A stretch of 64,000 nucleotides of DNA from Heptranchias perlo (taxonomy: Eukaryota), in the NCBI RefSeq assembly GCF_035084215.1, contig NC_090340.1:4278001-4342000 (forward strand). Reading direction: 5' to 3'. A program made the position numbers and the translations under genes. The notes under the pieces are model-generated. The model saw only the letters and a list, made by a program, of their open reading frames with translations, made no database searches and was not told the origin of the DNA. This document shows, in pieces, positions 1 through 60,549 of this stretch (the first letter of the stretch is position 1; the number at the start of each line of letters is the position of its first letter).

Positions 1-890
1 GTCGGCCACAAATTTTGAAATTGTACTTTCGATTCCCGAGTCCAAATCGTTTATGTAAATGGTGAACAACACTGGTCCCAGCAACGATCCTTGTGGAACA
101 CCACTTCCCACCTTTTGCCAGTTTGAGTAACTACCTTTAACCCCCACTCTCTCCTTTCTGTTTTGTAACAAACTTGTTATCTATTCTGCTACTTATCCCC
201 TGACGCAACATGCACTGACCTTAGTCATGAGTTTACTATGTGGTACCTTACCGAAGGCCTTTTGTAAATCCAAATCTATAACATCCACTACATTGCCCTT
301 ATCTACACTTTCTGTAACTCCTTCAAATAATTCAATAATGTTGGTCACGCATGACCTTCCCTTTTGGAATCCGTGCTGACTATTCTTTATTCTCATTTTC
401 GGTTTCGAGATTTTTCTCTATTACATCTTTGAGTAGGATTCCAATATCTTTCCGAATACTAACGTTAAGCTAATTGGTCTATAGTTCCCTGGACTTGTTT
501 TATCTTCCTTTTTAAATGTAGGGATCAGATTAGCTGTCCTCCAGTTCTCTGGCACTATTACTTTTTGTAATGAATTTATATATATATATATATATATATG
601 TAGAAGTGCCTCTACGATCTCTTCCTTAATGCTTTTAGTATGCTTCTGGACCTGGGCATTTATCCTCTCTAAGATTGATTACTTTATCAATTGCCTCCCC
701 CTTTCTATCTTAAAGGTCTTTACATCTTTTTCGATCTCTTCTTCCAACGTCATGCCCACCATATTAGTCTCCCTGGTAAATACTGAAGCAAAGTAATTAC
801 TTAATAATTCTGCCATTTCACTGTCGTTGCCTGTTGGTTTATCTTGTTTATCTATTAGTGGCCCGATCGCTAACCTGATTTTTCTTTTAT
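1..890 (-). mobile_element. CR1 LINE ORF2 fragment (RT region); host element split by the insertion at 891-2170
   Basis: ORF 193-396 reads SQHGFQKGRSCVTN...VDVIDLDLQKAFGKVPH, a CR1 RT motif. Frameshifted; approximate bounds. Confidence 0.9.
576..599. repeat. (TA)n microsatellite
   Basis: Perfect TA run. Confidence 0.95.
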
Positions 891-2170
891 AGGAACATAG
901 GAATATAGGAACAGGAGTCGGCCATTTAGCCGCTCGAGTCTGCTCCGCCATTTGATAAGATCATGGCTGATCTGTGATCTAACTCCATATATCTGCCTTT
1001 GGCACATATCCCTTAATACCTTTGGTTGCCAAAAAGCTATCCATCTCAGATTTAAATTTAGCAATTGAGCTAGCATCAATTGCCGTTTGCGGAAGAAAGT
1101 CCGAACTTCTACCACTCATTGTGTGTAGAAATGTTTTCTATTCTCGCTCCTGAAAGGTCTGGCTCTAATTTTTAGAACGTGCCCCCGACTCCGAGAATCC
1201 CCAACCAGCGGAAATAGTTTCTCTCTATCAACCCTATCTGTCCCCCTTAATATCTTATAAACTTCGATCAGATCACCCCTTAACTTTCTAAAATCTGGAG
1301 AATACAACCCCAATTTGTGCAATCTCTCCTCGTAACTTAACCCTTGAAGTCCGGGTATCATTCCAATAAACTTATGCTGCACTCCCTCCAAGGCCAATAT
1401 GTCCTTCCGAAGGTGTGTGCTAGAACTGCTCACAGTACTCCAGGTGCGGTCTAACCAGGTTTTTGTATAGCTGCAGCATAACTTCTGCCTCCTTGTACTC
1501 TAGTCCTCTAGATATAAAGGCAAGTATTCCATTAGCCTTATTGATTATTTTCTGCACCTGTTCATGACACTTCAATGATCTATGTACCTGAACCCCTAAG
1601 TCCCTTTGGACATCCACAGTTTTTAACTTTTTACCATTTAGAAACTACCCTGTTCTATCCTTTTTTGATCAAAAGTGGATGACCTCACATTTGCCTACAT
1701 TGAATTCCATTTGCCACAGTTTTGCCCATTCACCTAATCTATCAATATCCCTTTGTAATGTTGTGTTTTCATCTACACTGCTTATAATGCCACCAATCTA
1801 TGTGTCATCGGCAAACTTAGATATGAGACTTTCTATGCCTTCATCTAAGTCGTTAATAAACATTGCGAATAATTGAGGCCGTAAGACAGATCCCTGCGGG
1901 ACTCCACAAGTCACATCCTGCCAATGTTAGAACCTAGCCGTTATCCCGACTCTCTGTCACCTTTCGCTCAGCCAACTTGCTAACCAAGTCGGTACTTTTC
2001 CCTCGATTCCATGGGCTTCTATCTTAGCTAACAGTCTCTTATTTGGGACTTTATCAAAAGCGTTCTGGAAGTCCATATAAATATCATCCATTGACATTCC
2101 CCTGTCCACTACTTTATTCAACTCTTCATAAAATTTAATCAGTTTTGTCAGGCACGACCTACCTTTCACA
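891..2170 (-). mobile_element. 5'-truncated CR1 LINE inserted into an older CR1
   Basis: RT C-terminal motifs ([25 protein letters not shown]) and a ggaacata-type 3' terminal repeat. tttat flanks both sides (886-890 and 2171-2175), and the host frame rejoins as HINNK|RKIRLAIGPL. Confidence 0.9.
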
Positions 2171-3710
2171 TTTATTATTTATGTGTCTGTAGAATAATTT
2201 GCTATTTTTTTGATATTCCTTGATAATTTAATTTTGTGCTTTCTTTTTGCCTTCCTAATTGCTTTTATGACTTATTTCCTAACCCTTTCCTATTCCCTTT
2301 TGTCATCCTCTCGTTTTTTGTCTGCGTCTTTAGTGTATGAATTTTTCTTCAGTTTCAATTTGGCCCTTATTTCTTTATTCATCCATGGTGTGTCATTACT
2401 GTCGAGTTTTTTCTTGCTTTTTCGTGGGATATATTTCTCCTGGACTCTTGTGATCACCGTTTTATACATTTCCCACTGCCGTTCTATTTCTTTCATTGTC
2501 AGTAATTTTTTCCAGTTGATTTTTCCTAGTTCCATTCTCATCTTCTGAAAATCAACTTTTTCACCCAATTTATTACTTTTGCCTTTGTCTTACTTACTTC
2601 CTTCTCAATCTTTACCTTAAACCTTTTTATGTTGTGATCACTATTGCCTAGATGTTCTGCTAAGCTTTATTTTCTTATTTGTCCTGGTTCATTTCCCATT
2701 ACTAGATCCAGCAGTGCTTCCTCTCTTGTTGAGCTTTCTACGCACTGAGTGAGAATCTGTCCTGCACACATTGTAAAAACTCTATTCTCTGTACCCCTTT
2801 TGTACCTCTTCTTGCCTACTCCTACTCCTATCTCTTATGGTCTCTTATGGATTATGCTCTCTTCTTGACAGTTTATTGGGGATGGGTAAAATTGCCTACA
2901 TACTTGTTCCTCTACCTCCTCCCACTATTAGGTGGTCTATAGTGGATCCCCATTCGCGTGATCGTGATAGTGGATCCCCATTCGCGTGATCGATCTCTTA
3001 TGTTTGATTTCAATCCACATAGAATCTGTTTCTATCCTTCTGTTAGTTATGTCCCTTTTTTCTAATGCCATTATATTATCCCTAATTAGTACAGCAACTC
3101 CATCTCCCTTTCTTTCTCCCTATCCTTTGTGATTAAACCTGCAATATTCACTTGCTAGTCCTTTTCTTTATGGAGCCATGTTTCACTTATTCCTACTACA
3201 TCTGTTTCCTCATTTCGGATTATTGCCTCCAGTTCCCCCGTTTTATTTCGGACGCTGTGTACATTGCTGGGCAGATAGTTTAAATCGTCCTTTTTACTTG
3301 TTTCATTCAATTTTACACGTTTTACCTTATCATTTTTCTTATTTGTCACTCCCACTTTGTTGATTTCAGCTTTTTTATTGTTTCCCAGACCCGGAGTATA
3401 TATGGTTTCTACAACACTGGCCTGGATTTTACTCTGGTCCCTTGTTCTTACTCTTGTTTTTTCTTTTTTACTAATATTTTTCTCTGAACCGCCCCCCTTA
3501 TCGAGTTAAAGTCTTATTAACCACCCTATTTATCCTTTCCACTGGGACCTTGCTCCCAGCTGTTTCAGATGCAGCCCGTCGCAACTGTACAGCTCCTTCC
3601 TGTCCTATTACTGGTGCCAGTGTCCCATGAAAAAGAACCCGTCTTTCCCACTCTAATCCTTCAGCCACGTGTTTATTTCCTGATCTGTTTGTCCCTATGC
3701 CATTTCGCAT
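2171..3710 (-). mobile_element. CR1 LINE upstream part (ORF2 endonuclease/tether and ORF1 end)
   Basis: Fragments NVHSVRNKTGELEA..DVVGISETWL (APE endonuclease) and PWMNKEIRAKLK. Confidence 0.85.
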
Positions 3711-3889
3711 CAATGCAGCGACTGAAGGGAATGCCGATTTCTTGCAGCATGTTTCCTCATGTTCTTAACATTGTAGCAAATTCGCCCACTCCACGATCTA
3801 AAAAATCGCGTCTGTGATCTGGGCACACGCGGGAAATGGAAATCGCTAACTTGGCACTGCCGGCCTGTGACTTTGTGCTTTTTTTTCAA

Positions 3890-4225
3890 TTCATTCTGGA
3901 GATGCGCGCATGCTGGCAAGGCTGGCATTTATTACCCATCCCTAGTTACTTTGAGAAGTTAGTGGTGGGCTTGCTAGGACACTTCAGAGGGCAGTTAAGC
4001 GTCAACCTCACTGGTTTGGGACTGCAGTCACAAAGAGGTCAAACTAGGTGAATACGGCAGGTTTCGTTCCCTGAAGGACATTAGTGAACCACATAGGGAT
4101 TTAAGACAATCCAACAGCTTCATGCTCACTCTTGCTGATACCAACTATATATGCGGATTTTTAAAACTTAATTCAAAATCTCAAACTGCCATGTAGGATT
4201 TGAATTCGCATTCTCTGGGTTTCGT
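3890..4225 (-). mobile_element. tRNA-head SINE sharing its 5' head and 3' tail with the LINE at 13096-16548
   Basis: The reverse complement contains tagggatgggtaataaatgcc (matches the LINE 3' end near 16480-16505) and a B-box-like ttcaaatcc followed by ggcagtttgag. Confidence 0.65.
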
Positions 4226-4633
4226 CCAGACTTATTTAATGGACACAAAATCATGGAGTGCGGTTGTACAATTGCGCAATATATTGCCCGCTGTGTTCAG
4301 GAGACAACAGCAGATATTTTTTTTTCTGTTCACTACAGTTGATGGAAACTTTTAAGCTATATGTTGATGGTTACTTAAACTATATGTTGCTTCACAATCT
4401 GGAGGTGACAATTCGAAGTCGGGTGCCTCTGACTTACTGTCACAGATACCGACAAGTCTAATGTTTCTACGCCTGTTTGTTGCATAATTACTGGTATCAC
4501 TCTGCACTATTTTTGTATAAATCTTTACAACGACAGAATAACGCGGGGCAAATCATTTCAATGCTAGTTTTACGCTCGGACTCTTCTTTATATTTACATT
4601 CGAAATATAATGGAATAGATTATGGAAACATAC

Positions 4634-4677
4634 CGGCTGTTTGCAATGGTCTGAGCTTTCATCGTCGTTCTGCGCTC
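4634..4677 (-). CDS. VJ-C1 gene A, exon 5 (cytoplasmic, 44 nt): GAQNDDESSDHCKQP
   Basis: ttcattaccag|GAGCG...CAGCCG|gtatgt, phase 1 to 0. Same length, phase and donor as the gene B exon at 54645-54688. Confidence 0.75.
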
Positions 4678-4757
4678 CTGGTAATGAACGAATTTCAAGA
4701 CTTTACAATGAAGCATTTCATTAGCTTAGAAATACACTAAGTGGTGGACTTAATGTA

Positions 4758-5200
4758 AGAACATAAGAACATAAAGCATAAAAAATAAGAGCAGGTGTAG
4801 GCCATACGCACTCGAGCCTACACCGCCATTTAATAAAATCAGGGCTGATCTTCGAACTCAACTCCACTTTCCCGCCTGATCCCCATATCCCTAAATTCCC
4901 ATAGAGTCCAAAAATCTATCGATCTCATTCTTGAATAAACTCAACTACTGAGCACCCACAGCCCCCTGAGTTGAAGAATTCCAAATATTCACGACCTTCT
5001 GAGTGAAGAAATTCCTCCTCGTTTCAGTCCTAAATGGTCGACCCCTTACCCTGAGACTGTGCCCCCTAGTTCTCGACTCTCCAGTCAGGGGAAATAGCGT
5101 CTCAGCATCTACCCTCTCAAGGCCTCTCAGAACCTTATGTTTCAATGAGATCACCTCTCATTGTTCTAAATACCAGAGAGTATAGGCTCATTCTACTCAA
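4758..5200 (-). mobile_element. CR1 LINE 3' end in a gene A intron
   Basis: LFPLTGESRTRGHSLRVRGRPFRTETRRNFFTQ plus aagaacat terminal repeats. Confidence 0.9.
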
Positions 5201-5782
5201 TGTAAAATATTACATGATCTTGATATCATATTTAAGGAATTGCTTAGATTCTGACCTGTGATTAACAATAATGACGGCATTGATCATCTACCGACGGGGT
5301 CTTGCACGCAGCAGCAGGATGATTGGAAAATCCCAGGAACACTGCCCACTATTCCATGTCCATTGTCCTGAATGGATGGAAAGTCGCAGGCGATGAAAGA
5401 TTGTTTTCCAATACAGATCCCGCTGAGTGCCAGTCTCAGCAGATGGCTGGGGGGTGCTGGGAAATTCCGCTGCATTTTACGCAGCATGTAAGAAATTCGA
5501 ATCTACCTCCACACCAGTAGTGATAAAAATCATAGTCCACAAATTAGTTGTTGAAATTTGTATAAATGAAACAGACTGTGGTGAAAGTGAAGGGACCCTT
5601 ATACTTTTCAACCTAAGGGAAATCGATAATCACCAACAGTTCCAGTTCCTGTGTGACAGCGTAACTGCACTTTGACCGTTAAGTTACAATCAACTCCTTT
5701 TCTATCTACATGTAACAGGAACTTCCCGCTCTCTCTTCGAAAGTTGTGTTTACATTAATAAAAATACTAAATGATTACTTAC

Positions 5783-5893
5783 CTTTATTCTTCTTTGAGA
5801 GACATCGCTTCCCGATGATGAGAACTAATACCGCGAATACCAACCCGACCCCTGCACATGCAGAAATCAGCAAGTAACGGGTGATCTGACCAC
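5783..5893 (-). CDS. VJ-C1 gene A, exon 4 (transmembrane): GGQITRYLLISACAGVGLVFAVLVLIIGKRCLSKKNK
   Basis: ctaatag|GTGGT...AATAAAG|gtaagt; 111 nt, phase 1-1. Hydrophobic ~21 aa stretch followed by a basic stop-transfer segment. Confidence 0.9.
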
Positions 5894-6512
5894 CTATTAG
5901 ATTTAGATGAAATATATAAATATGAAGTAGTACACTATTCAATTCAACAAGATCACGACTTAAAAGATCGTGAATATTTTAATCAATTTTTGCTATTTTA
6001 TTACTTTTTATTTAAAGTATAGTTTTATGAAACAAAATAAAACATGAGCTATGTTTAATTTTTCATTCTTGTGAAATAAGTTATATTTACATTATGTTTC
6101 CTTATACTCAAATCTGATTGCAATAAGACTTCGATATAAGTGTGATAATGATTAATTTGTTACTTTATAAGAAGCTAATAACTGTTGCTAAAATTATAGA
6201 TGTCTGCAGGTTGCGAGCACGGTTTAAGTGATGTAGGAAACAGCGGTCCAGCTCCGATGCGTTGCGACTTGGGGAACGGCAGGATACGGCTTACATCCCG
6301 ATATTGTCACAAGCGTCAGTTCCATATCTCGACCGTGACTCCCACTGGGGCAGGTGATGCTGAACTGCTGTTGCAGAGGCTTTGGAGCAGTACACCTGGC
6401 ATAACTCCACAGATTTGATGATGGAGGTGGGGCCGGGTCTGGAGGGAGGGGGGTGGGGAGCGATCACAGTAATCGGTTCTATTTGCAGGATAACTGAGAT
6501 CTGCTATCTTAC

Positions 6513-6821
6513 CTATAGGATAGGTGACAATGTGAGTGGCCGTGGCTGGAATTTGTAATGTAACGTGAGACACCAGGCAGGTATAAACAGTTCCAGTTGG
6601 AACAGGCGGTGTATCATCCAAACGGCTGGAAGCTTCATATAGTCCATCGGTGTTGAGTTGTATAACGTTACTTATCTCTGTTGTAGTTTTGGTCCCATCT
6701 TTATACCAAGTGAAGGTGATATTCTGCGGGTAAAACGGAGATGTCGCGCACACAATAGTCAGAGACGCAGATGAATCCTTTTCATGTTCTTGAGAGGTAA
6801 TTTTCAGCGGAGTTGGCGGAA
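6513..6821 (-). CDS. VJ-C1 gene A, exon 3 (Ig C1-set domain)
   Basis: tttttctag|TTCCG...CCTATAG|gtaaga; 309 nt, phase 1-1. C1 motifs [43 protein letters not shown]. Confidence 0.95.
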
Positions 6822-6984
6822 CTAGAAAAATTGAGGAAAGCAACGTTACTCGGGCATCAGTCAAGGTCATCAACAGTCGCTTTGTTTCGTCCGAATCCGG
6901 ACAGCACGATGAGGGGAGATATTCACTGTGCGCTATCGGTAGCGACATCGTAAACGGCATCTTCGTAAATGTTCACATTATCTC

Positions 6985-7105
6985 GGGGGTAATTTTATCT
7001 TTTATCCCCGGGCGATAAAGGGTGACCGCTGATGGGAAAGAAAATCGGGCGGCCGATTAACTATCGCCTGTTTTGCGGTACCGCTGCCGACCAATTCCAC
7101 CCCTT
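6985..7105. mobile_element. Short imperfect-palindrome MITE-like repeat
   Basis: ggggtaatttt...aattccacccc termini; related copies near 12646/20059, 32648 and 36893. Confidence 0.5.
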
Positions 7106-7730
7106 TAATTATAGCAGCTGATGATAAAGTACAATTTTCCCAAACGCGAGGGACTTTGACACAAAGTTTCTGGATGATATCCTATTTACTGGAGGCTAAA
7201 AAGATGATGAAAATATGGCGTGCGTGGCTCAAGTTACTGAGTGCGGACTTTAACTGTTAGTCACACCCGGCTTTCAACGATCTTAACATAAAGACCATTA
7301 AGTTACAAATGAGCGAATCTGAATTCCAATAGAAACGGTCAGCCTTCCCGAACCAATACAGACAAAATAAACCAACGAACTGGTTAAGATTTTGCTTACT
7401 TTGGCAGATCCGCGTTGGTATCCAATGCTGTCGAGATATATATATCCTTAACGGATACTGCAATTTTAACTTAATATGCTTGTTGTATAAATGCTGACTG
7501 TGTGTGTTTGGGCTAAAATTACTACCAGATAATCCTCTTGTTGATTAATATTGCTAAAATATTGTAATACCCAATAGCATGTAACGTGTAGCAGCCTACA
7601 TGCAATTTGAATTTATAAATACAAAACGATTGGAATGTAAGTTGCAATGTGAATCCTTCAAAGCACACCAGAGAAATGATTCGAATATTACAGTCACAGA
7701 GATCGCATTCGTCGCTATTTTCATACTTAC

Positions 7731-8051
7731 CCCATACTGCTAAATATGATCCAGTTCCGTTTCCAGCTATTCTCCCTTGATGGGCGACAGTGCAATAATA
7801 CAATCCCGAGTCCTTTACAGTCACATTGATTAACCGAAGGAAGCCGCTGAATTTAGTTTTGAAGCCAGTTACTTTTCTCTCATCAGGTCCTGTGCTGAGA
7901 TATTTATTATCACCCTGTTTCCACCAGTGCACGTTCACACGTGGGCCGTCTTGAAATAAGGGAATCGAGCAATGAAAGGAGACGCTTGTACCTAAGATTG
8001 CGCTCGCGCTTCCAGGGAGTTGAGTCACTTTGACCGAAGTATCGCCGGAGT
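7731..8051 (-). CDS. VJ-C1 gene A, exon 2 (Ig V-set domain with fused J-like strand)
   Basis: ttttccgatag|ACTCC...GTATGGG|gtaagt; 321 nt, phase 1-1. VKVTQLP..GTSVSFHC..VHWWKQ..LRLINVTVKDSGLYYC..AGNGTGSYLAVW. Confidence 0.95.
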
Positions 8052-8223
8052 CTATCGGAAAAGAAAATCAAAAACGAATTAGCGAGATTGTGTTACAGGA
8101 GAAAAGGCGCGAGGGTAAGGGAGTCAGGCAAAGAGTCCAAACGACAGTGATACATTTTATATGAAAGTAAAGTATCTACTTGCGCGTTTTAGCTATAAAG
8201 CGGGTTGTAGAAGAAACAGGTAC

Positions 8224-8278
8224 CTATGGAAATGATTCCCAGAACAGAGATGCAATGAAGTACAACGCTCACCAACAT
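8224..8278 (-). CDS. VJ-C1 gene A, exon 1 (signal peptide): MLVSVVLHCISVLGIISI
   Basis: ATG at 8278; 55 nt ending in phase 1 at ATAG|gtacct; hydrophobic; 172-nt intron to the V exon. A homologous segment precedes gene B. Confidence 0.8.
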
Positions 8279-8280
8279 TC

Positions 8281-8370
8281 TGAGCCAATTAATCACTCGG
8301 AGCGACAGACCGTGAACTGGCTGATGGTTTGTAAGAACACTGAGGGGCCGGAGTATGAAATACGTCACAA
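8281..8370 (-). promoter_or_regulatory. Putative proximal promoter/5' UTR of gene A
   Basis: agccaat (CCAAT box) and atggtttgtaag occur upstream of both paralogs; TGACGTA CRE-like site near 8361-8367. Confidence 0.4.
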
Positions 8371-9659
8371 TGAAGCATGATACTGTCAATGGATTCAGAA
8401 AATGCCCTTTTTTGTCTGTTTGGTGAGATTTGCTGAAACAATTGTATATTCGCCAGAAGAGGGCGCAGCTCGGAATTTTAAGTTTTTGCAGCTGGACCGG
8501 CCCAGCCACGGGACCTTCCAACCGAAGGAAAACTGTGAAGAAAAGGTTATGCACTCGTTTCGGAATTGCAGATTACAGTGCACTGCGCCTAGTATTTCCA
8601 CGGGAGTTTTCTGACGGTAGACCGGTGGAATCCCATGAAGATTGGTATCCTGGTGTTGAATTTCCTTTGAATTTATTCGCCAAACCTGCACAATCTTAGC
8701 AGGGAGGAGTAAAACGGAGAGGGGACAGGACGTCTTGAAACACCGGCCCTTGTCCCTCACTGTGATTATCTCTAGAAGTGGAGGAGATCAGAAGAATTAC
8801 AGGCACCTTATTGGCGGAGGTAAGGAAATGACGTGTGTAACAGATGATATCACTCATTCCAAATCCGTTATTTATGCCAGGATTACCCCGTCTGTCGCTG
8901 GAGTCGATACCTGCAGCAGGGCATCGAGGTAGAAGTAACCTTTTAAAATATGTTTTTGGTTCTACAAGCACTGCCAGTAACTTGGCAATTTATGAATTGG
9001 AGCCGGCCTGCAATCTATCTATGTCTCGTCTTTGGGGTAGAAGGGAATGTTTTCCCTTAGATCTCACACAAGCTTCACTATGGGTTTCCCAAAAGGGAAT
9101 GTTCTCCACAGTATCTTAACCGGGATATAATAAGATTAGGGGATGAGCATCACAGGGAACATAGTTCATTGGGCATCACAAGATGAGAATAAGGCCTAGG
9201 CCAATCATCCCTCCAAAAAGTCTCTCAAGAGATATAACCGGGGAGACTTCACTGACAAAAGAATCTCTGGATGAGAAGCCAGACCTGAAACCAGCTTCCA
9301 CCTCTAGCACATCACTTAGTCTCGGCGGGGTCATTATCCATGGGACAGGACAGTTGGCTAGACCACCCAGGTTGACATGATGTTCTTCCCCCAAAAGATC
9401 AGTTACCTCGACAGGAGAAGCTTCCTCTCCCTCAATGTCCAGATTGTGTCTGATAACATGCACAGGATCCTACGTTTCAATGTGAGATATGCTTGAAGTT
9501 GTCACGACAGATTCATCCATTAAAATTCGACTGTCCCTGACCGCCACTGGGAGTAAAATTACGTCAACGGATGGCTTGCAGGTGACAAAACCTACCTCCT
9601 GTTCTCATTGAAAACGATCCAATGAAGCGTGGCTTGAACAACAGCAGGGGAGCGCTACA

Positions 9660-12739: not shown

Positions 12740-13095
12740 GGGTTTTAACGGGTGGGAGAGGTGGTTAACGAATGCGATGGTGTTCAACCGATGGGAGAGT
12801 TGTTTAAAGGGTGGGAGTGTATGACGGATGGGAAAAGTTTTAAACGGGTGGAGAGGTGTTTATCGAATGGGCGAGTTGTTTAAGCGGTGGTAGAATTGTT
12901 TAACGGGCGGGAGCGATGTTTAATGGGTAAGGGTGTGTCTAAAGGGGGTGGGAGAGGTGTCTATGCGGTGGAAGAGGTGTGTAACGGGTATGAGAGGTAT
13001 TTTCCTTATAGGAGAGGCGTATAATGGGTGGGACAGATGTATAAGGGTGGGAGGGTGTTTAAAGAGTGCGGGATGAAGAGGTGTGTTACGGTTGG
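12740..13095 (+). repeat. Degenerate 20-bp minisatellite, left part
   Basis: Unit approximately aggtgtttaacgggtgggag. Confidence 0.9.
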
Positions 13096-16548: not shown

Positions 16549-19500
16549 CAGTGTATAACGGATGGGAGAGAGGTTTTACGGATGAGTGACGTGTTCAACG
16601 AATGGGAGAGTTGCGTAAAGGGTAGGAAAGTTATATTATGGATGGGAGAAGTATTTAACGTTTGAGAGAGGTGTGTACCGGTTGGAAAGGTGCTTAACGG
16701 GTGGCAGAGGTTTTTAACGGGCGGGGGAGGTGTTTAACAGACTGGAGAGTTTTTAACGGGCGGGAGAGGTGTTTAAGGGGAAGGAGAGAGAGTGGCTTGT
16801 AAAGAGTGGTTGAGATGTTTCTCGGGTGTGAGAGATGTATAAGATGTGGGATAGATATTTAACAAGGAGGAGAAGTGATTAACGGGTGAGCGGGGTGTTT
16901 AACGGGTAGGAGAGACTTCTAGCGGGTGGGAGAGAAGTTTAACGGACGAGAGAGGCTTTTAACGTGTGGTTGAGACGTTTAACGGTTGGAAGAGGCGTGT
17001 AACGGATGACAGAGGCTTTTAACTTGTGGAGATGGTGTTTATCGTGTTGGAGAAGTTGGTAACGAATTGGTGAAGTGCTTAACTGGTAGGAAAGGTGTTT
17101 AACGGTTGGGAAAGGTTTTTATCGAGTGCCGGGGTGTTTAATGGGTGCGAACGTTATATGAGGGGGTGGAGAGGTGTTTAATGGGTGGAAGATGTGTGTT
17201 GCGAATAGAAGAGGCTGTTTAACGGTGGGAGAAATGTTTAACAAGGGGGCTGGTGTTAATTTGTGAGAGATGCTTTTAACGGGATGGATAGGATTTTGTA
17301 AGGGTGAGTGAGGTTTATAACGGATGGGAGAGGTGTTTAACTGGTGGAAGAGGTGTGTAACGTGTGATGGAGGTGTATAACGAATGCGACGGCTACTTAA
17401 CGGATAGGAGAGGTGTTAAACGGATAGGAGAGTTGTGTAACGGTTAGGAGAGCGGTTTAACGGGTGATAAAGATGTTTAAAGGGAGGGACAGTTGTCCAA
17501 CGGGTAGGAGAGGATTATAAGCAATGGGAGAGTTGCTTAACGGGTGGAAGAAAAGTTTAACGGATGGGAAAAGTGTCTAATGAGTTGGAGAGGTATGTAT
17601 GTGGTGGAGGAGGTGTGTAACGAATGTCGAATGTGGTTAACGGGTAGGAGGTGCTTTAATGGGTGGGAATGTTTAGTGGGTGGCAGATGTGTTTAAGGGA
17701 TAGGCGAGGCTACTTAACGGATGGTTCTGAGTGTTAACAACAGTCGAGGTGTGTAACGGATGGAAGAAGTGTTTAACGAGTGTGGCCGTGTTTAAGGGGT
17801 GTGGAAGTTATTTAACGGGGATGAGAGGTATTTAGCGGATGGGAGTGGTGTTTAACGGTTGGGAGAGGTGTTTTAATGAGTGGGAGAGGGGTTTAGCTGG
17901 CGGAAGAGGTGCTAAAAGAATAGGAGAGGTGTGTATCGGCTGGCAAATGTGTTTACCGAGTGCGGCGGAGGTGTTTAAGTGGTGGGAAATTTAATTAAGG
18001 GGGAGGAGTTGTGTTTTACGGGTGGGAGAGGTGTTTAGAGTGTTGGAGATGTGTTTTCCAGGCAGGAGAGTGGTGTAATTTACGGGAGAGGTATTTAACA
18101 GCTCGGAGAGACTTTTAAAGGGAAGCGGTGTTTATCGGGTGGGAGAGGTTTTAAACGGTTGGGAGAAATGTCAATGCATTGGAAATGAGCAACGGGTGGG
18201 AGAGGTGTTTATGGGGTATGAGAATTGCTTAAGGGGTCAGAAATGTTTTTTCACGGAGATGAGAGGTGATTAACGGGTGGGAGAGGTGCCCAACTGGTGG
18301 GAGAGGTGTTTCACTGGTGGGAGAGTTGCCTAACTGGTGGAAGAATTGTCTGTCGAATGGAAGAGGTGTTTATGCGGTGGAAAAGGTCTGTAACGGGGGG
18401 AGAGGTGTTTAAACGGTCCAAGTGGTGTTTAAGTGGTGGTGGTGGGTGGGGGGGGGGACATTAACCAATTGGAGGTATGTTTAACGGGTGGGAGAAGTGT
18501 GTAACAGGTGGGAGAGGTGGTCAACGAGTTCGGGGGTGGGGTGTTTAAGGGGTGGGAAAGTTATTAATGAGGGAGGAATGGTGTTTGACGGGCGGGGGAG
18601 GAGTTTAATCGGTGGGAGAGGTGTTTAGCCGGTTGGAGATATGCTTAACGGAAGAGGGAGACTTTTAACGGGTGGAAGAAGCGTTTAACGGGTCGGAGAG
18701 TTGTGTAACGGGTGGTAGAAGTGTGTAACGCATGGAAGCGATGTTTGATGCATGATAAAGGCTTTGAACGGGTGAAAGAGGTGTGTATCAGGTACGAGAT
18801 ATGTCTAACGGGTGGAAGAGGTGTGTAACGGGTGGGAGAGGTGTTTAGCGTATGCGGAAGAAATTTAAGGGGTGGCAAATTCAATGAAGCGGACGAGAAG
18901 TCTTTAACAGGTTGGAGACGTGTTTAATAGCTGGGGGAGGTGCTTAACTTGTGAGTGAGGTGTGTCATGGGTGGGACAAGTGTTTAACCTGTTAGAGAGT
19001 TGTTTAACGATTAGGGGAAGTGTTTAATGGGTACGAGAAGTGTGTTACTGGTGGGAGAGGTGCTTAAGGCAGGGAGATGGGGTTAACGCGTGAGTGAAGT
19101 GTATAACTGATGGGAGAGGATGTAAGGTGTGCGAAAGTTGTTTAGCGGCTGAGAGAGGTGTTTAACGTGTAAAAGAGGTTTGTAACGGGTGGGAGAGGTG
19201 CCTAACTGATGAGCTACTGTTTTAACGGGTGGAAGAAGTTTTTATTGGGTGGGAGATATGTTTAACGCGTGAGGAAGGTGTTTAACGGGTATGAGAGGTG
19301 TGTAACAGGTGGAAGAGGTGTTTAACGAATGGGAGAGGTGTTTAACGACCAGATGAGGTCCGTAATAGGTGGGATAGGTGTTTAACAAGTGCGGAACGTA
19401 TTTAAATGGTGGGGAAGTTATTGAGGGGGGCGGGAGGGAGAGATTTTTAACTGGTGTTTAATGGTTGGAAGAGGCATCTAACGGGTAGGAGGGCGCTGTA

Positions 19501-20000
19501 ATGGATGGGAAAGGTATGTAACGTGTGGGAGAGGTGTTTAACGGGTGAGAGAGGTTTGCAACTGGTAGATGAGTTGCCTAACGGATGAGAGAGTCTTTTA
19601 ACGGGTGGAAGAGGTGTTATTGTGTGGGTGAGATGTTTAACGGGTGGGGGAGGTGTTTAGCTAGACCGGGAGGAATGTAAGGGTTGGGAAAGATATTTAA
19701 CGGGAAGGAGAGGCGCGTAAGATTGGGGGAAGGTGTTTAACAGGTCGGAGAGGTTTTTAAGCGGTCGATGAGGTATGTAATGGGCGAGAGATGTGTTTAA
19801 AAGGTGAAAGGGGGTTGTAACGTGTGGGAGAGTTCTTTAGCTTGTGGAAGCGTGTTTTAACCGGTGGTATATGTACTTAAGGGTTTGTAGAGGTGTTTAA
19901 CGGGTGGGAGAAGTATAACACGGGTGGGAGAGGTGTTTACGGGGCGCCAGAGGTATTTAACGGAGGAGAGAGGTGTTTAACCGGTGGGAGAGGTGTTTAA
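16549..20000 (+). repeat. Degenerate 20-bp minisatellite, ~3.4 kb, G/T-rich top strand
   Basis: Continuous variants of aggtgtttaacgggtgggag. Confidence 0.95.
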
Positions 20001-54644: not shown

Positions 54645-54688
54645 CCGTTCTTCGAAGTGTTGAGATCCCTCTTCTTTTCTGCGTGCGC
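54645..54688 (-). CDS. Gene B cytoplasmic exon (44 nt): GARRKEEGSQHFEER
   Basis: tttcactag|GCGCA...GAACGG|gtatgt; matches the gene A exon in size and phase. Confidence 0.75.
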
Positions 54689-55144
54689 CTAGTGAAATAC
54701 AACATTTATCTTTCAACATATATCAGGAAGTTAGGCACTGAGAGCAGGGGAATCCGACTTAGTCTCAGCCAATAAGACCTTCAGGATCGCAGCTCATGAC
54801 AAGTTTTGAAAATTTAATCGCAACGCCGCCTTCCTTCGAACAATTTTGAATTAAAGTTCCCGCAATGCATTCGGCCCATAACACAAGGAATTACTGATTG
54901 CAATCTATGAAAAGCACCGAAAAATGCAAATAGCTGTTCTCGTTAATCATTTATTTTAAGTTCATTTGAATGACACTTGGACAAATCATCAATGTCACAT
55001 CGTGGAACCAATTAAAGCTGTTCAACAAATCAACAGAATTCGATTCCTGTAGCAGTTTTAACGCGTCTTAATCAGCCTGCCGTCATATTGTTCTCTTTTT
55101 TATTACAAATGTTTCACAACGAAACTGCAGATTTGGCTCCTTAC

Positions 55145-55258
55145 CTTTACAGTTACTGAGTTGGCAACTCTTCCCAATGACGGCGACGAGGGCTAGAAGT
55201 ATCAATGCACCCCCTGTACATCCAGAAATCAGTAGGTAATGGGGGATGTGCTCATTGC
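55145..55258 (-). CDS. Gene B TM exon: GNEHIPHYLLISGCTGGALILLALVAVIGKSCQLSNCK
   Basis: attatag|GCAAT...TGTAAAG|gtaagg; 114 nt, phase 1-1. Confidence 0.88.
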
Positions 55259-55897
55259 CTATAATAATAATAATGTGTTAGTTGCACGATTTATGTATTC
55301 AGTGCCTCCATAATGAGACTTAACTCGGGCAAGCTGATTTAGTTCTAGATATCATATATACGTTTATTGATTCTGGTTTTCCCTTCAGCAGAATCCGGCA
55401 TGTGAATTGTCTGCATTACAGGGGCAAAACATAATTTTTCGATTTTCATTGACACGACAATGATGAACTTTGAAGCTAAGAAGACTGTGGCGCAAATTGC
55501 AGCCGCATTATTCATCCTTGGTTGATGCCTCCCGGAGACCATCAGCTGAAACAGGAATTGACTTGGATCGGCAGGGTATCAATAAAGGGAAATATTTAAT
55601 TAAATGAGAAAAATACATTCTACGTATTTCTCTCTTTATTAAAATACCAGGAATTGAATCTGATGACCATTAATATAATTCAGTTCATAATTATAATCTT
55701 TATAGATTAAACTCTTTTCCTCTGATGGAGACATTTTACTTTTTTTCATCTGTTATACAAATCCGCAAATAGCAACAATCTTTAAATGAAAAATCTTTAA
55801 ATTTATTGTCTGCCAAAAACAAAACAGACTGATGGCAAATAATCAGATTTATAGTTAACGATGGCTGCCAATATCTGTAAAAATGTCAACATTTTAC

Positions 55898-56197
55898 CTG
55901 GGTCAGAACTGGAATCAAAGTAAACGGCTACGGCTGGACTCTGCAGTGTGAGGTGAGACACCACACAGGTATATATTACCCCGCTCTGGGCTGGCAGTGT
56001 CGCTTTAAAACTGCTGGAAGCTTCATACATTCCCTCCGAATTCAGCTTTATAATGGTGGTGATTCCTGTCACAATGTTGATGTCATTTTTATACCAAGTG
56101 AAGGTGAGAGGCTCTGGATAGAACACAGCCGTCGCACACACAAGAGTTCGAGCAGATGAGTTGGTTCCGAACACTTTGGGAGACAGACTCACGGGTT
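55898..56197 (-). CDS. Gene B Ig C1-set exon
   Basis: LVCATAVFYPEPLTFTWYK..NSEGMYEASS..YTCVVSHLTL; donor CCAG|gtaaaa; in-frame acceptor ttccccag|AACCC. Confidence 0.9.
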
Positions 56198-56637
56198 CTG
56201 GGGAAGCCTTGGAGCAAGGCAGGGAATACATTGTCTCGATGTGGCGAACTTAGTCCGATTTGGCGCTCAGTCTTCTTGAATGTAACAGTGTGACTCTAGG
56301 TCACAGGTACAGAACTAAACCACTGACTGGAACTGACCTGGATCTGCAGGGTCGCCATTTGCTTGTTGGATGATACTATGAATCAAATTCACACTTTGGA
56401 TACTGAACAATTCGAATTAAGCTACTTCGCATAACTTTCTAGACTAAAATGCGGACGATTCACAACCGTGTTGCAGTAACAGGAGAATGTATTTCAATGC
56501 GAGTAGACATTCAGGGCGTCGGTGCTTCGTGCTTGGTCCAGGGAAAGAATTCAATTTAGCTTTTAACTCAGCAGATGTTTGCTGTGTTTTCTTATTGGGC
56601 AGCGTTTAGTAAATAGGCAAAACGTATTCAGGTAATA

Positions 56638-57995
56638 TTTGCTTGAGTTCTTTGAGGACATAACGTACAGGGTGGATAAATGGGAACCAGTGGACGTAGT
56701 ATATTTAGACTTCCAGAAGGCATTCGACAAGGTGCCACATAAAAGATTATTGCTCAAGATAAAGAATCACTGGATTGGGGGTACTATTCTGGTATGGGTG
56801 GAGGATTGGTTATCTGACAGGAAGCAGAGAGTTGGGATAAATGGTTCATTCTCAGACTGGCAACCAGTAGCCATTGGTGTTCCGCAGGGGTCGGTGCTGG
56901 GTCCCCAACTCTTTACAATCTATATTAACGATTTGGAGGAGGGGACCAAGTGTAACATATCAAAGTTTGCAGATGATACAAAGATGGGAGGGAAAGTAGA
57001 GAGTGAGGATGACATTAAAAACCTACAAAGGGATATAGACAGGCTGGGTGAGTGGGCGGAGATTTGGTAGATGCAATACAATATTGGAAAATGTGAGGTG
57101 ATGCACTTTGGCAGGAAAAATCAGAGAGCAAGTTATTATCTTAATGGCGAGAAACTGGAAAGTACTGCAGTACAAAGGGATCTGGAGGTTCTAGTGCAAG
57201 AAAATCAAAACGTTAGGATGCAGGTGCAGCAGGTGATCAAGAAGGCCAACGGAATGTTGGCGTTTATTGCAAGGGGGCAGAATATAAAAACAGGGAGGTA
57301 TTGCTGCAGTTATATCAGGTACTGGTGAGACCACACCTGGAATACTGCATACAGTTTTGGTGTCCATACTTAAGAAAAGACATACTTACTCTCGAGGCAG
57401 CACAAAGAAGGTTCACTCGGTTAATCCCGGGGATGAGGGGGTGGACATATGAGGAGAGGTTGAGTAGATTGGGACTCTACTCATTGGAGTTCAGATGAAT
57501 GAGAGGCGATCTTATTGAAACACATAAGATAGTGAAGCGGCTTGATCTGGTGGATGCGGTAAGGATGTTCCCAAGGATGGGTGAAACTAGAACTAGGGGG
57601 TATAATCTTAGAATAAGGGGCTGCTCTTTCAAAACTGAGATGAGGAGAAACTTCTTCACTCAGAGGATTGTAGGTCTGTGGAATTTGTTGCCCCAGGAAG
57701 CTGTGGAAGCTACATTATTAAATAAATTAAAAACTGAAACAGACAGTTTCTAAGAAGTAAAGGGAATAAGGAGCGGGCAGGAAATTGGACATGAAGCTGA
57801 GTTCGGATCGGTCAAGGCCCTGTGGGTGGCGGTGCGGGCCCAGGGGCTGAGTGGCCCGGTCCTGCTCCTACTTCTTGTGTTCTTTAGATTTGAGGTTAGG
57901 ATCTGATCAGCCATGATCTTATTGAATGGCGGAGCAGGCTCGAGGGGCCGATTGGCCTACTCCTGCTCCTATTTCTTATGTTCTCATGTTCTTAA
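56638..57995 (+). mobile_element. CR1 3' part in the gene B V-C1 intron, antisense to the gene
   Basis: [29 protein letters not shown]; ttcttatg tail. Confidence 0.95.
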
Positions 57996-58049
57996 TATAA
58001 TTTCAAACTGTTCGCGTTAAGAATTGCAAATTTGGAACAAAGGGGCAAA

Positions 58050-58710
58050 ATCATTACCGCCCAGAGTAGTGGTACTTTAAAGCCGGGAGTATTGTCGGGA
58101 CATTATAAATAGAGTCACAGAGTACAAAAGCCAGGAAGTTATGCTAAACATTTACAAATCGATGGTGAAACTTCAGCTGGTGTATTGTGTCCAATTCGGG
58201 GCACCATATTTTAGGAAGAATGCAAAGGGTGTAGACGGGTTTGCCAGAATTATACCACGGATGAGGGACTTCAATTCTGTGGAGAGACTGGAGAAGCTGG
58301 GATTGTTTTCCTTACAGCCGAAAAGGTTAACGGGAGATGTAATTGATATGTGCAAGATGAGGTGGGGTTTTGCACGAGTAAATAAGGAACAACTGTTTCG
58401 TTTGACAGGAGGATCCGTAAACAAAGAACATGGATTGAAGACAATTGGCAAGAGAACTAGACGAAACAAGTGGAAATTTATTTTTTAAACAGCGAGATGT
58501 TATGTTCTGGAATGCCCTGAGTGAACCGGTGGTGAAAGCAGATTCAATAGTAACCTTCAAAAGAGAATTGGATATATACATGAAATATAATTTTGTAGGG
58601 TTATGGTTGAAGGGCAGTTCAGAGTGACAAATGGGATAGCTCTTTCAAAGAGCCGACACATGCACGATGGGCGGAATGGCCGCTTTGTCTGCTGTAAGAT
58701 TCTATGAAAT
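58050..58710 (+). mobile_element. Older CR1 3' fragment
   Basis: ERLEKLGLFSL; attctatg tail. Confidence 0.8.
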
Positions 58711-58934
58711 TAGAGGCAGGTGCTTTCATTGCGACAAGAGTTTTTAAACACACAGGAACAAGTGCATAACACAGGAAGGATCTGAAAATACTCAGTAGCC
58801 CAGCTGTCCATTCCATAAATCTAATACCTCTGAAGCGTCCACTCCATCAAATATCGATTCAATTCTCGTGTAAAATTTTCAACATTATCTGCGCCCATCG
58901 GACAGTCCGTTTTGCATGTTTACCACCTTCTGCG

Positions 58935-58958
58935 ATATATATATATATATATATATAT
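58935..58958. repeat. (TA)n microsatellite
   Basis: Perfect TA run. Confidence 0.9.
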
Positions 58959-59547
58959 AAATCAGTTAAATCTACTGTCTCTGCCCACCTTCCCTCCGAG
59001 AAGTTTCAGCCATTGTGCGTTGGCTGCCGTCTTTGTGGAAATTTCGAGCTAACTATCCATTCTCTTAATAGTCTTGAACACTTGAAAAAAATACTCCATG
59101 CGCCTTCTGTGCTCCAAAATAAACACGCCCGGGCTCCGCAATGTCTCATCGTTACTCAGGTACCTTAAACTAGTCTTCAGTTTGGCTGTCCTGGTTGAAA
59201 AAAGCGTCCAATGCTTGTTTGTCCTCAATGTCGTTTTTTGATAGAATTGTACACCGTATTCAAGGCGTCGGCGTACCAGTTCCCCAATAATTTTACAATA
59301 CTAACACCAGGGATGAATTCAGTAAATAAGCAAAACAACTGATGATACAACATATTTAACTCTAGATACTTAAAACACTTTAAATATACCTGTACTGTAA
59401 CTATCCATATATAAATATACTACAGATTGACTGTTAGCAATGTTTGAAAAAAAGAAAACTCATAACGTGGCCCTCTGCCTCTTTTCGTTATTGTGGAATG
59501 GCGGTAGTGCAATACCAACGATCGCATTTTTCTGCAAGGTCGCTTAC

Positions 59548-59859
59548 CGTGCACAACAAGCTTCGATTCGGTTCCATTTACGATCCGGTTTCCAGTGTAT
59601 CTCACTCCACAGTAATAGAATCCGGAGTCTGGGACACGCACATTCACGATCTGGAAGGAAGCCTCTCCGTTTTCCAAAGGGAAGAATCGTTTACTGCCGT
59701 CAGAACTTGGTTTTAATAAGTGTTTGTCGCCAAGTCTCCACCAATAAACATTCACATCTGAATTATCATGGACAGAGCTCGTCAGGCATTGGAAAGTAAC
59801 GTCTGCACCTGAAATCACACTGGTGCTTTCAGGGGTATGGAAAACTTCAGCGGGAGCAA
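59548..59859 (-). CDS. Gene B Ig V-set exon with fused J-like strand
   Basis: ctgttttatag|TTGCT...GTGCACG|gtaagc; 312 nt, phase 1-1. GADVTFQC..VYWWR..FQIVNVRVPDSGFYYC..IVNGTESKLVVH. Confidence 0.93.
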
Positions 59860-60019
59860 CTATAAAACAGTCAAAAAACATTAATTTCAAAATAGGGATA
59901 CAAGATATTTAGGCACGGATAGATAAATTGATCTCCAAATAAAGAGATAGTTGGATAAATAGATAGAGATACTATATAGATCGAAGAAAGGAAGAATGGT
60001 CCATTATAGCAGAGAATAC

Positions 60020-60077
60020 CTTTGTAAATAATCCTTAGCACCCATATGTACTGAAACAAACGTTCTACAATGGATAT
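60020..60077 (-). pseudogene. Gene B leader-exon homolog lacking ATG: ISIVERLFQYIWVLRIIYK
   Basis: Aligns to the gene A leader (LFQYIWVLRII vs VLHCISVLGII); donor AAAG|gtattc, phase 1. Confidence 0.65.
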
Positions 60078-60549
60078 TGATCAGCCAATGAACCGCGGCT
60101 CTAATGGTTTGTAAGTATCTGTAGATAATGCGATCTGATTTGTGATGTGATGAGGTGTCGTATCATGTGCCTAAACCTGCTTTCGATAAGCTTTTTTAAG
60201 TGGCGAGATGTGAATGCAAATGTCATTTAATATGCATGAGAACCTGACCTCAACAGAAACTGTAATCTGAAGTTAAACCAAAGCCTCTCTGGTTGGCCTG
60301 TATGCGATTTATCTCACTGACGTATGATTAAGCAAGTAACAGGTTCTCGACACGTTGATGAAATTCACTGACTTCCTAGAAGCAGTTCATATTATACAGA
60401 ATGTGTAGAAAGGAAGGGATGTGGGTGGTCGGATTGCCAATAAGCGAAGGTCGGAAAGCTTCAGCAAGAAGACAATTTGTGCTGAGTCTGGTCCAAGTGA
60501 CCCTGCCCCAAACCCGTCAGTATTTCCTCCCTCGGTCTGTATTATCCAT

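Follow-up and report, generated by a model that had tools for sequence, protein, structure and literature searches.

A probable SIRP-like inhibitory receptor gene with a single C1 domain in Heptranchias perlo, from a multigene family known so far from cartilaginous fishes only

The described systems closest to the gene considered here are the SIRPs, the UrIg and UrIg2 proteins of elasmobranchs, and the immunoglobulin (Ig) lambda light chain and T-cell receptor (TCR) chains. SIRPs are defined with two C1 domains in the accessible text of PMC12975943. The kinship of V-C1 SIRPs with the antigen-receptor precursor is already in print: in the accessible part of PMC2785349, SIRPs (V-C1-C1) are proposed as possible kin of that precursor on the ground that V and C1 domains are combined in them, and the idea goes back to 2005-2009. 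UrIg2 has 9 to 11 C domains according to the accessible part of PMC12227049, in which the word SIRP occurs 0 times, as it does in the shark MHC paper. Here, we analysed 64,000 nucleotides of DNA from the sharpnose sevengill shark Heptranchias perlo (contig NC_090340.1, positions 4,278,001 to 4,342,000 of the forward strand; below, the window, whose first letter is position 1), and in particular a minus-strand gene, gene 1, which runs from window position 8278 to 4634. An earlier note, made from the letters alone, had taken this gene for a germline receptor shaped like a TCR or Ig light (IgL) chain, and had cited the proposal that VJ-C1 genes are relics of the receptor that preceded RAG. We consider it quite probable that gene 1 is instead an intact, transcribed SIRP-like inhibitory receptor with a single C1 domain, belonging to a multigene family known so far from cartilaginous fishes only. 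The exon structure, splicing, domain types, tail sequence, family membership and elasmobranch orthologues described below were observed directly. Since we found no recombination signal sequence (RSS), no cysteine in the stalk and no charge in the transmembrane (TM) core, gene 1 is a SIRP-like receptor with one C1 domain and not a TCR/IgL-like chain.

Gene 1 consists of five exons, which encode a leader, a V domain with a J-like G strand, a C1 domain, a TM segment and a cytoplasmic part (Table 1). When the reverse complement of 4400-8500 was translated, all five exons were found to have canonical GT/AG sites and none contained an internal stop. Their lengths of 55, 321, 309, 111 and 44 nt add up to 840 nt, or 280 codons; this total is a sum over separately translated exons, and each search query consisted of one exon alone. 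The V, C1 and TM exons are all of phase 1-1. The V exon ends with ...YYCTVAHQGRIAGNGTGSYLAVW, a J-like G strand of the GxG type, and thus the V and J-like parts share one exon. The TM core (YLLISACAGVGLVFAVLVLIIG) has zero charged residues in translation, and the stalk, PIGGQITR, is 8 residues long with zero cysteines.

The domain types were assigned with Pfam. The V exon matched ig with 39.3, Ig_3 with 37.8, V-set with 37.0 (cut-off 26) and I-set with 26.4 bits. A V-set domain, which SIRPs also have, is present in gene 1, with a V-set score above the cut-off and a J-like GxG G strand, though the I-set score is close and the domain has no specific similarity to that of SIRPs. The C1 exon matched C1-set with 51.4 bits (E 1.4e-13, cut-off 21), and its motif YTCLVSH is consistent with the Ig/MHC signature of PROSITE. 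No second C1-like stretch was detected near gene 1 by tblastn, and a second, degenerate C1 exon inside the C1-TM intron was considered and rejected for want of a match. An exact RSS pattern of heptamer, spacer of 12 or 23 and nonamer gave 0 matches across the whole 64-kb window, and a relaxed pattern (at least 13 of 16 positions over heptamer and nonamer) gave 0 matches in 4500-8400 and 55000-60100. Elsewhere in the window the relaxed pattern matched twice, at about 40.2 and 42.3 kb. Much of what the earlier note had read from the letters was borne out in this way: an intact five-exon gene with canonical GT/AG sites and 280 open codons (by translation and by the spliced contigs described below), a V exon that already holds the J-like strand GNGTGSYLAV, a single C1-set domain on one C1 exon, and, in both the exact and the relaxed scan, no RSS, so that the non-rearranging layout of leader, VJ, C1, TM and cytoplasmic exons stands.

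Table 1. Exons and related features of gene 1 and gene 2, in window coordinates
Feature	Position	Strand	Sequence	Further basis
Gene 1, leader exon	8224..8278	-	ATG at 8278; 18 codons + 1 nt; donor GT at 8223-8222; translation MLVSVVLHCISVLGIISI + one base	joint 8051/8224 in X1, 43 letters on leader side
Gene 1, V-type exon with J-like G strand GNGTGSYLAV	7731..8051	-	321 nt, phase 1-1; AG before, GTAAGT after	contig 7760-8051 with 0 mismatches; 75% identity to Heterodontus P0002
Gene 1, C1-set exon, single	6513..6821	-	309 nt, phase 1-1; AG before, GTAAGA after; motif YTCLVSH	99% identity to NCBI P0001; V to C1 and C1 to TM joints
Gene 1, stalk + TM exon	5783..5893	-	111 nt; AG before, GTAAGT after; contains YLLISACAGVGLVFAVLVLIIG then KRCLSKKNK	100% identity to P0001 residues 151-186; joints to C1, V (C1 skipped) and exon 5
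Gene 1, cytoplasmic mini-exon (exon 5)	4634..4677	-	44 nt, AQNDDESSDHCKQP; AG before; donor GTATGT at 4633-4628	joint 4676/5782 in X1 and X2; P0001 junction ...CKQP/ATVDV; depth 0 in 4500-4630
Gene 1, last intron, part in window	1..4633	-	LINE reverse-transcriptase open reading frames, minus strand, about 1-3500	tail exon beyond window start
Gene 2, V exon	59548..59859	-		tblastn; 37% identity to gene 1 V; 94% to P0177
Gene 2, C1 exon	55898..56206	-		47% identity to gene 1 C1; 87% to P0177
Gene 2, TM exon	55145..55258	-		100% identity to P0177 residues 223-261
Gene 2, cytoplasmic mini-exon	54645..54688	-	44 nt, GTATGT donor, both as in gene 1

Transcription and splicing were assessed with Logan contigs from three public runs, all of one sample and one study, whose label as RNA is a guess. 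The contigs were aligned to window 4500-8400 and are uninformative on expression level, transcript ends and strand. They cover the exons of gene 1, and the introns have zero depth save for a repeat at about 4762-5285, which is the pattern that RNA would give. The splice joints show CT..AC ends, equivalent to GT..AG on the gene strand. The leader is joined to the V exon at 8051/8224 (X1). For the joint from V to C1, one X1 contig aligns with 6617-6822, and its next 15 letters are those of 7732-7746, where the V exon ends. The C1 exon is joined to the TM exon at 5891/6511 (cut +2; X2), and the TM exon to exon 5 at 4676/5782 (cut +1; X1 and X2). The joints run from V to C1 and from C1 to TM directly, with no extra Ig exon between them; all predicted junctions were spliced as the earlier note had expected. 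None of the outcomes by which that note would have held itself refuted was observed. The intron repeat itself, in the stretch of about 4762-5285 between the TM exon and exon 5, is a very high-copy short repeat, at which contig depth exceeds 10,000 in each of the three runs.

The C1 exon retrieved the H. perlo NCBI protein P0001, of 289 residues and 99% identity; its name, 'tyrosine-protein phosphatase non-receptor type substrate 1-like', is equivalent to SIRPalpha-like. The earlier note had anticipated an automatic name of the SIRP-like or Ig-like sort, and this is what was found, both for gene 1 and for its relatives, which are named Ig lambda-1 light chain-like and otherwise. The window and P0001 differ by two residues. 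At the Q/E difference in FYPQNITF the RNA contigs carry the residue of P0001 (the other letter at 6726), and thus the window sequence probably represents another haplotype or individual than P0001. The start ATG of the public model lies within the V-C1 intron (about window 6960), so that the model has neither leader nor V domain; it then follows the C1, TM and 44-nt exons exactly and ends with ATVDVMAPYAALDMTKSRKDPRPKHQERTVYAQTKQRAPENQLTYASIDMTSSKKTAKPPRKDKSTEYAQLRMKNQRADVIYEERKAK. The NCBI model omits the presumed ligand-binding V domain, which the RNA contigs show spliced in. Two other H. perlo models, P0031 and P0060, likewise start at or near the C1 domain.

At 4633 the contigs part from the window; the letters beyond, 255 in the median, read ATVDVMAPYA... 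on the gene strand. Since both the contigs and P0001 continue past exon 5 into a tail, 4634 is a splice donor and not the end of the gene, and the last exon, which encodes the tail, lies outside the window. The bounds of 4634 and 8278 first proposed for the gene are therefore right at the leader ATG at 8278 and wrong at the other end, where the gene continues into the tail exon. A read-through of exon 5 to a stop near 4556 was considered and rejected, as RNA depth is zero in 4500-4630. The tail of P0001 is about 100 residues long and carries five tyrosines (...APYAAL...TVYAQT...LTYASI...TEYAQL...VIYEE), and its start is confirmed by the RNA contigs. By the patterns of the immunoreceptor tyrosine-based inhibitory motif (ITIM) and the immunoreceptor tyrosine-based switch motif (ITSM), LTYASI is of the ITIM type and TEYAQL of the ITSM type, with three further tyrosines beside them.

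On these features, the gene 1 product is a type I membrane protein with a signal peptide, a germline-joined V domain, a C1 domain, a short stalk and an uncharged TM helix, and the 44-nt exon and the tail exon beyond the window together encode its cytoplasmic part. If it acts as SIRPalpha (PMC12975943, accessible text) and ITIM receptors in general do, its V domain would bind a ligand, Src-family kinases would phosphorylate the tail tyrosines, and phosphatases of the SHP-1/SHP-2 type might then be recruited to the tail and damp the activation of the expressing cell.

Gene 1 belongs to a large family. Searched exhaustively with HMMER, 1.84 billion representatives yielded 792 matches to the C1 exon at E<=0.001, 12 of them at E<=1e-30, and 57 of the 160 proteins collected had a BLASTP match to the V exon as well (E<=0.001). 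On the C1 family profile, members score 79.5 to 150 bits vs at most 58 for outsiders. On the V family profile, with truncated members set aside, the 12 members with printed scores reach at least 106 bits, while outsiders reach at most 25, among them the UrIg-like P0151 with 17.8. The family is marked by at least 100 bits on the V profile and at least 79 bits on the C1 profile, with a clear gap to other proteins, and gene 1 belongs to it. All 54 of the 54 named members come from cartilaginous fishes (17 species of sharks, skates, rays and the chimaera Callorhinchus); about 30 additional family representatives stand outside this count of source names. Of 7368 candidates compared with the family profile, 32 reached E<=1e-8, and each of these belongs to a cartilaginous fish, although the word index behind these candidates evidently missed tetrapod SIRPs, which do match the family profile in PDB. 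Clustered at 50% identity, the family amounts to at least about 55 clusters in these fishes, and the H. perlo members listed are all on one 66.5-Mb record. Seven automatic names were seen for its members: SIRPalpha-like, SIRPbeta-1-like, Ig lambda-1 light chain-like, tapasin-related protein-like, CD276 homolog, NCR3LG1-like and MHC class II beta-like. Full-text searches of the literature, which reach neither subscription journals nor supplements (those of PMC12227049 and PMC10751288 could list such genes), brought up no publication that describes SIRP-like V-C1 genes of cartilaginous fishes as a family; 'PRARP' in the immunological sense received passing mentions only in the literature searched.

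The full-length relatives with the order leader, V, C1, TM and tail include P0005, P0014, P0038, P0064 and P0071. Many members share the tail type of gene 1, with two to five [ILVST]xYxx[ILV] motifs, and others are short-tailed, a mix that fits a family of inhibitory and short-tailed members. In one short-tailed subset (P0017, P0099, P0111, P0036, P0070 and P0081) the TM segment begins with R and ends with ...IIVDHV or IIVEHL, a conserved acidic-histidine pair. The members of this subset may be partner-dependent, non-inhibitory counterparts of the ITIM forms. Elasmobranch orthologues keep both domains, with identities of 50-75% in V and 57-76% in C1. The skate relative P0021 has two C1 domains, and the paralogue P0017 scores 46.0 bits with I-set vs 43.8 with V-set in Pfam. 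The J-like motif of the V G strand (window 7746-7760 region) contains an NGT N-glycosylation sequon that is nearly invariant across the family, N97 and G98 each being present in at least 90% of the V alignment. A glycan, if attached there, might occupy the face on which the V domains of Ig and TCR pair, and the sequon thus argues weakly against V-V dimers of the antigen-receptor kind.

Phylogeny was limited to the C1 domain, with a quick IQ-TREE run on 112 rows and 104 columns. The alignment excludes 13 near-duplicates (P0161-P0171, P0181 and P0182), C1 matches of fewer than 85 profile positions, and outgroup domains past the fourth per protein. The family forms one clade with a support of 89 in the Shimodaira-Hasegawa-like approximate likelihood ratio test (SH-aLRT). 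Within it, gene 1 and P0001 fall into an 18-row clade (SH-aLRT 99) with sequences from Heterodontus, Scyliorhinus, Mustelus, Hemiscyllium, Chiloscyllium, skates and rays, and thus gene 1 has orthologues or co-orthologues across elasmobranchs.

SIRPalpha (also SHPS-1, PTPNS1 or CD172a) resembles gene 1 in its N-terminal V domain with a J-like GxG G strand, its C1-set domain or domains, its uncharged TM segment, its tail with several ITIM/ITSM-type tyrosines, and a splice form that drops the C1 domain or domains. It differs in having two C1 domains where gene 1 has one, and in its V domain D1, which is about 9 residues longer and to which the V domain of gene 1 has no specific similarity. This low similarity calls for caution as to whether gene 1 would bind CD47. 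UrIg and UrIg2 (PDB 9dmx) are likewise non-rearranging elasmobranch proteins with a single-exon VJ and C1-type constant domains, but their VJ is followed by several C domains (Fc-like C2-C3), whereas gene 1 has a single C1 and an inhibitory tail.

The comparison with PDB did not single out one of these systems. With the C1 exon alone, shark UrIg2 came first (1.7e-18; 69.9 bits over three domains, 26.8 for the best domain), followed by an Ig lambda constant domain with 23.4 bits, SIRPalpha (2wng) with 28.5 for d3 and 16.4 for d2, and SIRPgamma. The C1-only profile gave 116 bits for three domains of UrIg2, 79.3 for two of SIRPalpha and about 80 for three of IgG heavy chains. With the full-length family profile, the best contiguous V-C match was Ig lambda with 72.9 bits; SIRPalpha obtained 67.4 for d1-d2 and 48.4 for d3, and UrIg2 56.3 for V-C1, plus 32.4 and 41.8 bits. 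The SIRPalpha d3 alignment begins with VPPT against VPPTPL in the family. The V exon and the V-only profile matched generic I-set and V-set domains only (titin, Robo, pIgR, single-chain Fv fragments, light chains and one TCR single-chain Fv fragment).

Several of our results weigh against assigning gene 1 to the SIRP-like receptors. Gene 1 has one C1 domain, not the two by which SIRPs are defined. Per C1 domain, SIRPalpha and UrIg2 tie, both ahead of the Ig heavy chains, and SIRP D1 was absent from the best 60 PDB matches of the V exon and of the V-only profile. The V domains of SIRPalpha and Ig lambda are each longer, by about nine residues between strands C and E (the C'-C''-D region), than the family V domain, whose C'' strand is probably short or missing. 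In the C1 tree the fork that sets the sister group of the family has a support of 0; lungfish 'SIRP-like' C1 domains adjoin the family and the UrIg-like domains lie across the midpoint root, the outsiders in this tree being poor references (lungfish C1 arrays P0084 and P0141, the mis-modelled turtle 'SIRPalpha X2' P0123, and the UrIg-like P0151 and P0020). The tail exon lies outside the window. The tail of the paralogue P0014 (residues 272-374) gave 4 matches among 49 candidates, all of them H. perlo paralogues, and residues 187-289 of P0001 gave no usable feature match in the ESM Atlas and structure TM-scores of at most 0.37; both searches have limited sensitivity and are no evidence of absence.

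These points leave some room for the proposal that gene 1 is a non-rearranging survivor of the lineage behind the antigen-receptor chains, that is, a relic of VJ-C1-TM layout with nearer kin in UrIg/UrIg2 and Ig/TCR than in the SIRPs, and with an ITIM tail acquired later or by convergence. The VJ and C1 exons do have the arrangement and phase found in antigen-receptor chains, V(J)-C1 with phase 1 exons, as in Ig lambda light chain and TCR, and the RSS was not found; UrIg2 is the top PDB match of the C1 exon when its three domains are summed, Ig lambda exceeds SIRPalpha d1-d2 as the best contiguous V-C match of the family profile, and NCBI names several members Ig lambda-1 light chain-like. However, the V-only profile shows no special affinity to the V domains of Ig or TCR, the C1-only scores of SIRPalpha and UrIg2 are about equal once divided by the number of domains, and the UrIg-like domains are not placed beside the family in the C1 tree, at a fork without support. 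TCR chains have an interchain cysteine, basic TM residues and a very short tail, and an interchain cysteine is expected in IgL too. Gene 1 has neither RSS-flanked V and J segments nor a separate J segment, and neither a pairing cysteine in its stalk nor a basic or otherwise charged TM residue; it is membrane-bound with a long ITIM-bearing inhibitory tail in place of a short one. We thus regard the relic proposal as unlikely. The two corresponding readings find no support here: the ITIM/ITSM tail, the uncharged TM segment and the stalk without cysteine speak against a receptor of TCR/IgL-chain shape, the likeness being one of domain order alone, and a pre-RAG relic is not indicated by a V domain without a specific relative, a C1 domain nearly equally close to SIRPalpha and UrIg2, and an unsupported fork.

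A broader version, in which V(J)-single-C1-TM is the ancestral layout that led to the SIRPs when C1 was duplicated and to the rearranging chains when RAG invaded the V exon, is in our estimate quite improbable. It keeps a small share of the probability because the C1 domain lies as near to SIRPalpha as to UrIg2, the V domain is no nearer to any one group than to the others, and the fork in the C1 tree has no support. If it were true, no living genes would resemble the pre-RAG receptor more closely than these shark V-C1 genes, which would be expressed in pairs of an inhibitory and a short-tailed form.

The contigs include further forms. In one of X1, the V exon is followed immediately by the TM exon (joint 5891/7729, cut +2, with 32 letters on the V side), and thus it represents a transcript without C1. 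Since the V and TM exons are both of phase 1, this C1-skipping transcript is in frame. It would encode a short form of V, TM and tail, recalling the short SIRPalpha of mouse, which, according to the accessible part of PMC12324903, has one Ig domain, binds CD47 and does not suppress phagocytosis of CD47-coated beads. By the same analogy, the V domain would sit nearer to the membrane in the C1-skipped form, and C1 skipping could tune signalling through the reach of the receptor. A further contig, 6353-6646 (11 differences and a 3-nt gap), crosses the C1 donor into the intron, where the frame is open to 6319; it may stem from unspliced RNA or a close paralogue, or correspond to a possible soluble form.

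It could be argued from these variants that the locus is transcribed without giving a working receptor, its major product lacking V or C1 and the full-length form being splicing noise. The P0001 model without leader and V domain, the contig that runs through the C1 donor, and the nominal depth of 19.3 for the V to TM contig vs 2.8 to 9.45 for C1-bearing contigs would agree with this, but contig depth is not a measure of expression. Moreover, all exons are open, the joints from leader to V and from V to C1 are present in the RNA contigs, and the elasmobranch orthologues conserve both V and C1. We therefore hold this explanation to be very unlikely.

That gene 1 encodes a B7/butyrophilin-type ligand with a V-C ectodomain instead of a receptor is the least credible explanation, with hardly any probability left to it: the V-C-TM layout is common to both and paralogues bear the names 'CD276 homolog' and 'NCR3LG1-like', but the C domain of gene 1 is not an IgC domain of the B7/butyrophilin type (C1-set 51.4 bits vs 13.7 for the CD80-like C2-set_2 and 13.1 for the butyrophilin C2-set_3, both below cut-off), no B7-family chain occurs among the best 60 PDB matches of the V, C1, full-length, V-only and C1-only queries, and the J-like GxG G strand and the ITIM/ITSM tail layout are against it.

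If gene 1 is indeed a SIRP-like inhibitory receptor, then a receptor that combines a single C1 domain with an inhibitory tail is expressed and conserved in the oldest jawed vertebrates alive today, within a family of dozens of genes on one chromosome. The family provides a concrete set of non-rearranging V-C1 genes for placement against SIRP, UrIg and Ig/TCR. To this, gene 1 adds complete splice evidence, a C1-skipping isoform and a flaw in the public gene model. Automatic annotation is unreliable here, with seven names for one family and a gene 1 model that lacks the V domain.

The content of the window is two family genes and repeats only. The second gene (gene 2) is a paralogue at 54.6-60.1 kb, on the minus strand like gene 1 and with the same exon plan, including the 44-nt mini-exon (Table 1). 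It is closest to P0177, the H. perlo 'NCR3LG1-like' protein, and its C1 domain forms a 4-row clade with P0177, P0051 and P0178 in the C1 tree (support 98*). At 60063-60061 gene 2 has ACG in place of the ATG of P0177, with two bases fewer just downstream. An in-phase C1 exon of 309 nt would need GG (about 56208-56207) for AG, and the only AG is one base out of phase. Judged by these differences, the copy of gene 2 present here (54645-60063) is apparently damaged. Within the window, the stretch downstream of gene 2 yielded no SIRP-like tail exon. Between the two genes, a satellite of 3.4 kb at 16551-20000 consists of about 173 copies of a 20-bp unit with 60% matches and a strong G-over-C skew of 0.41-0.66, and a 96-bp repeat at 12742-12915 is related to it.

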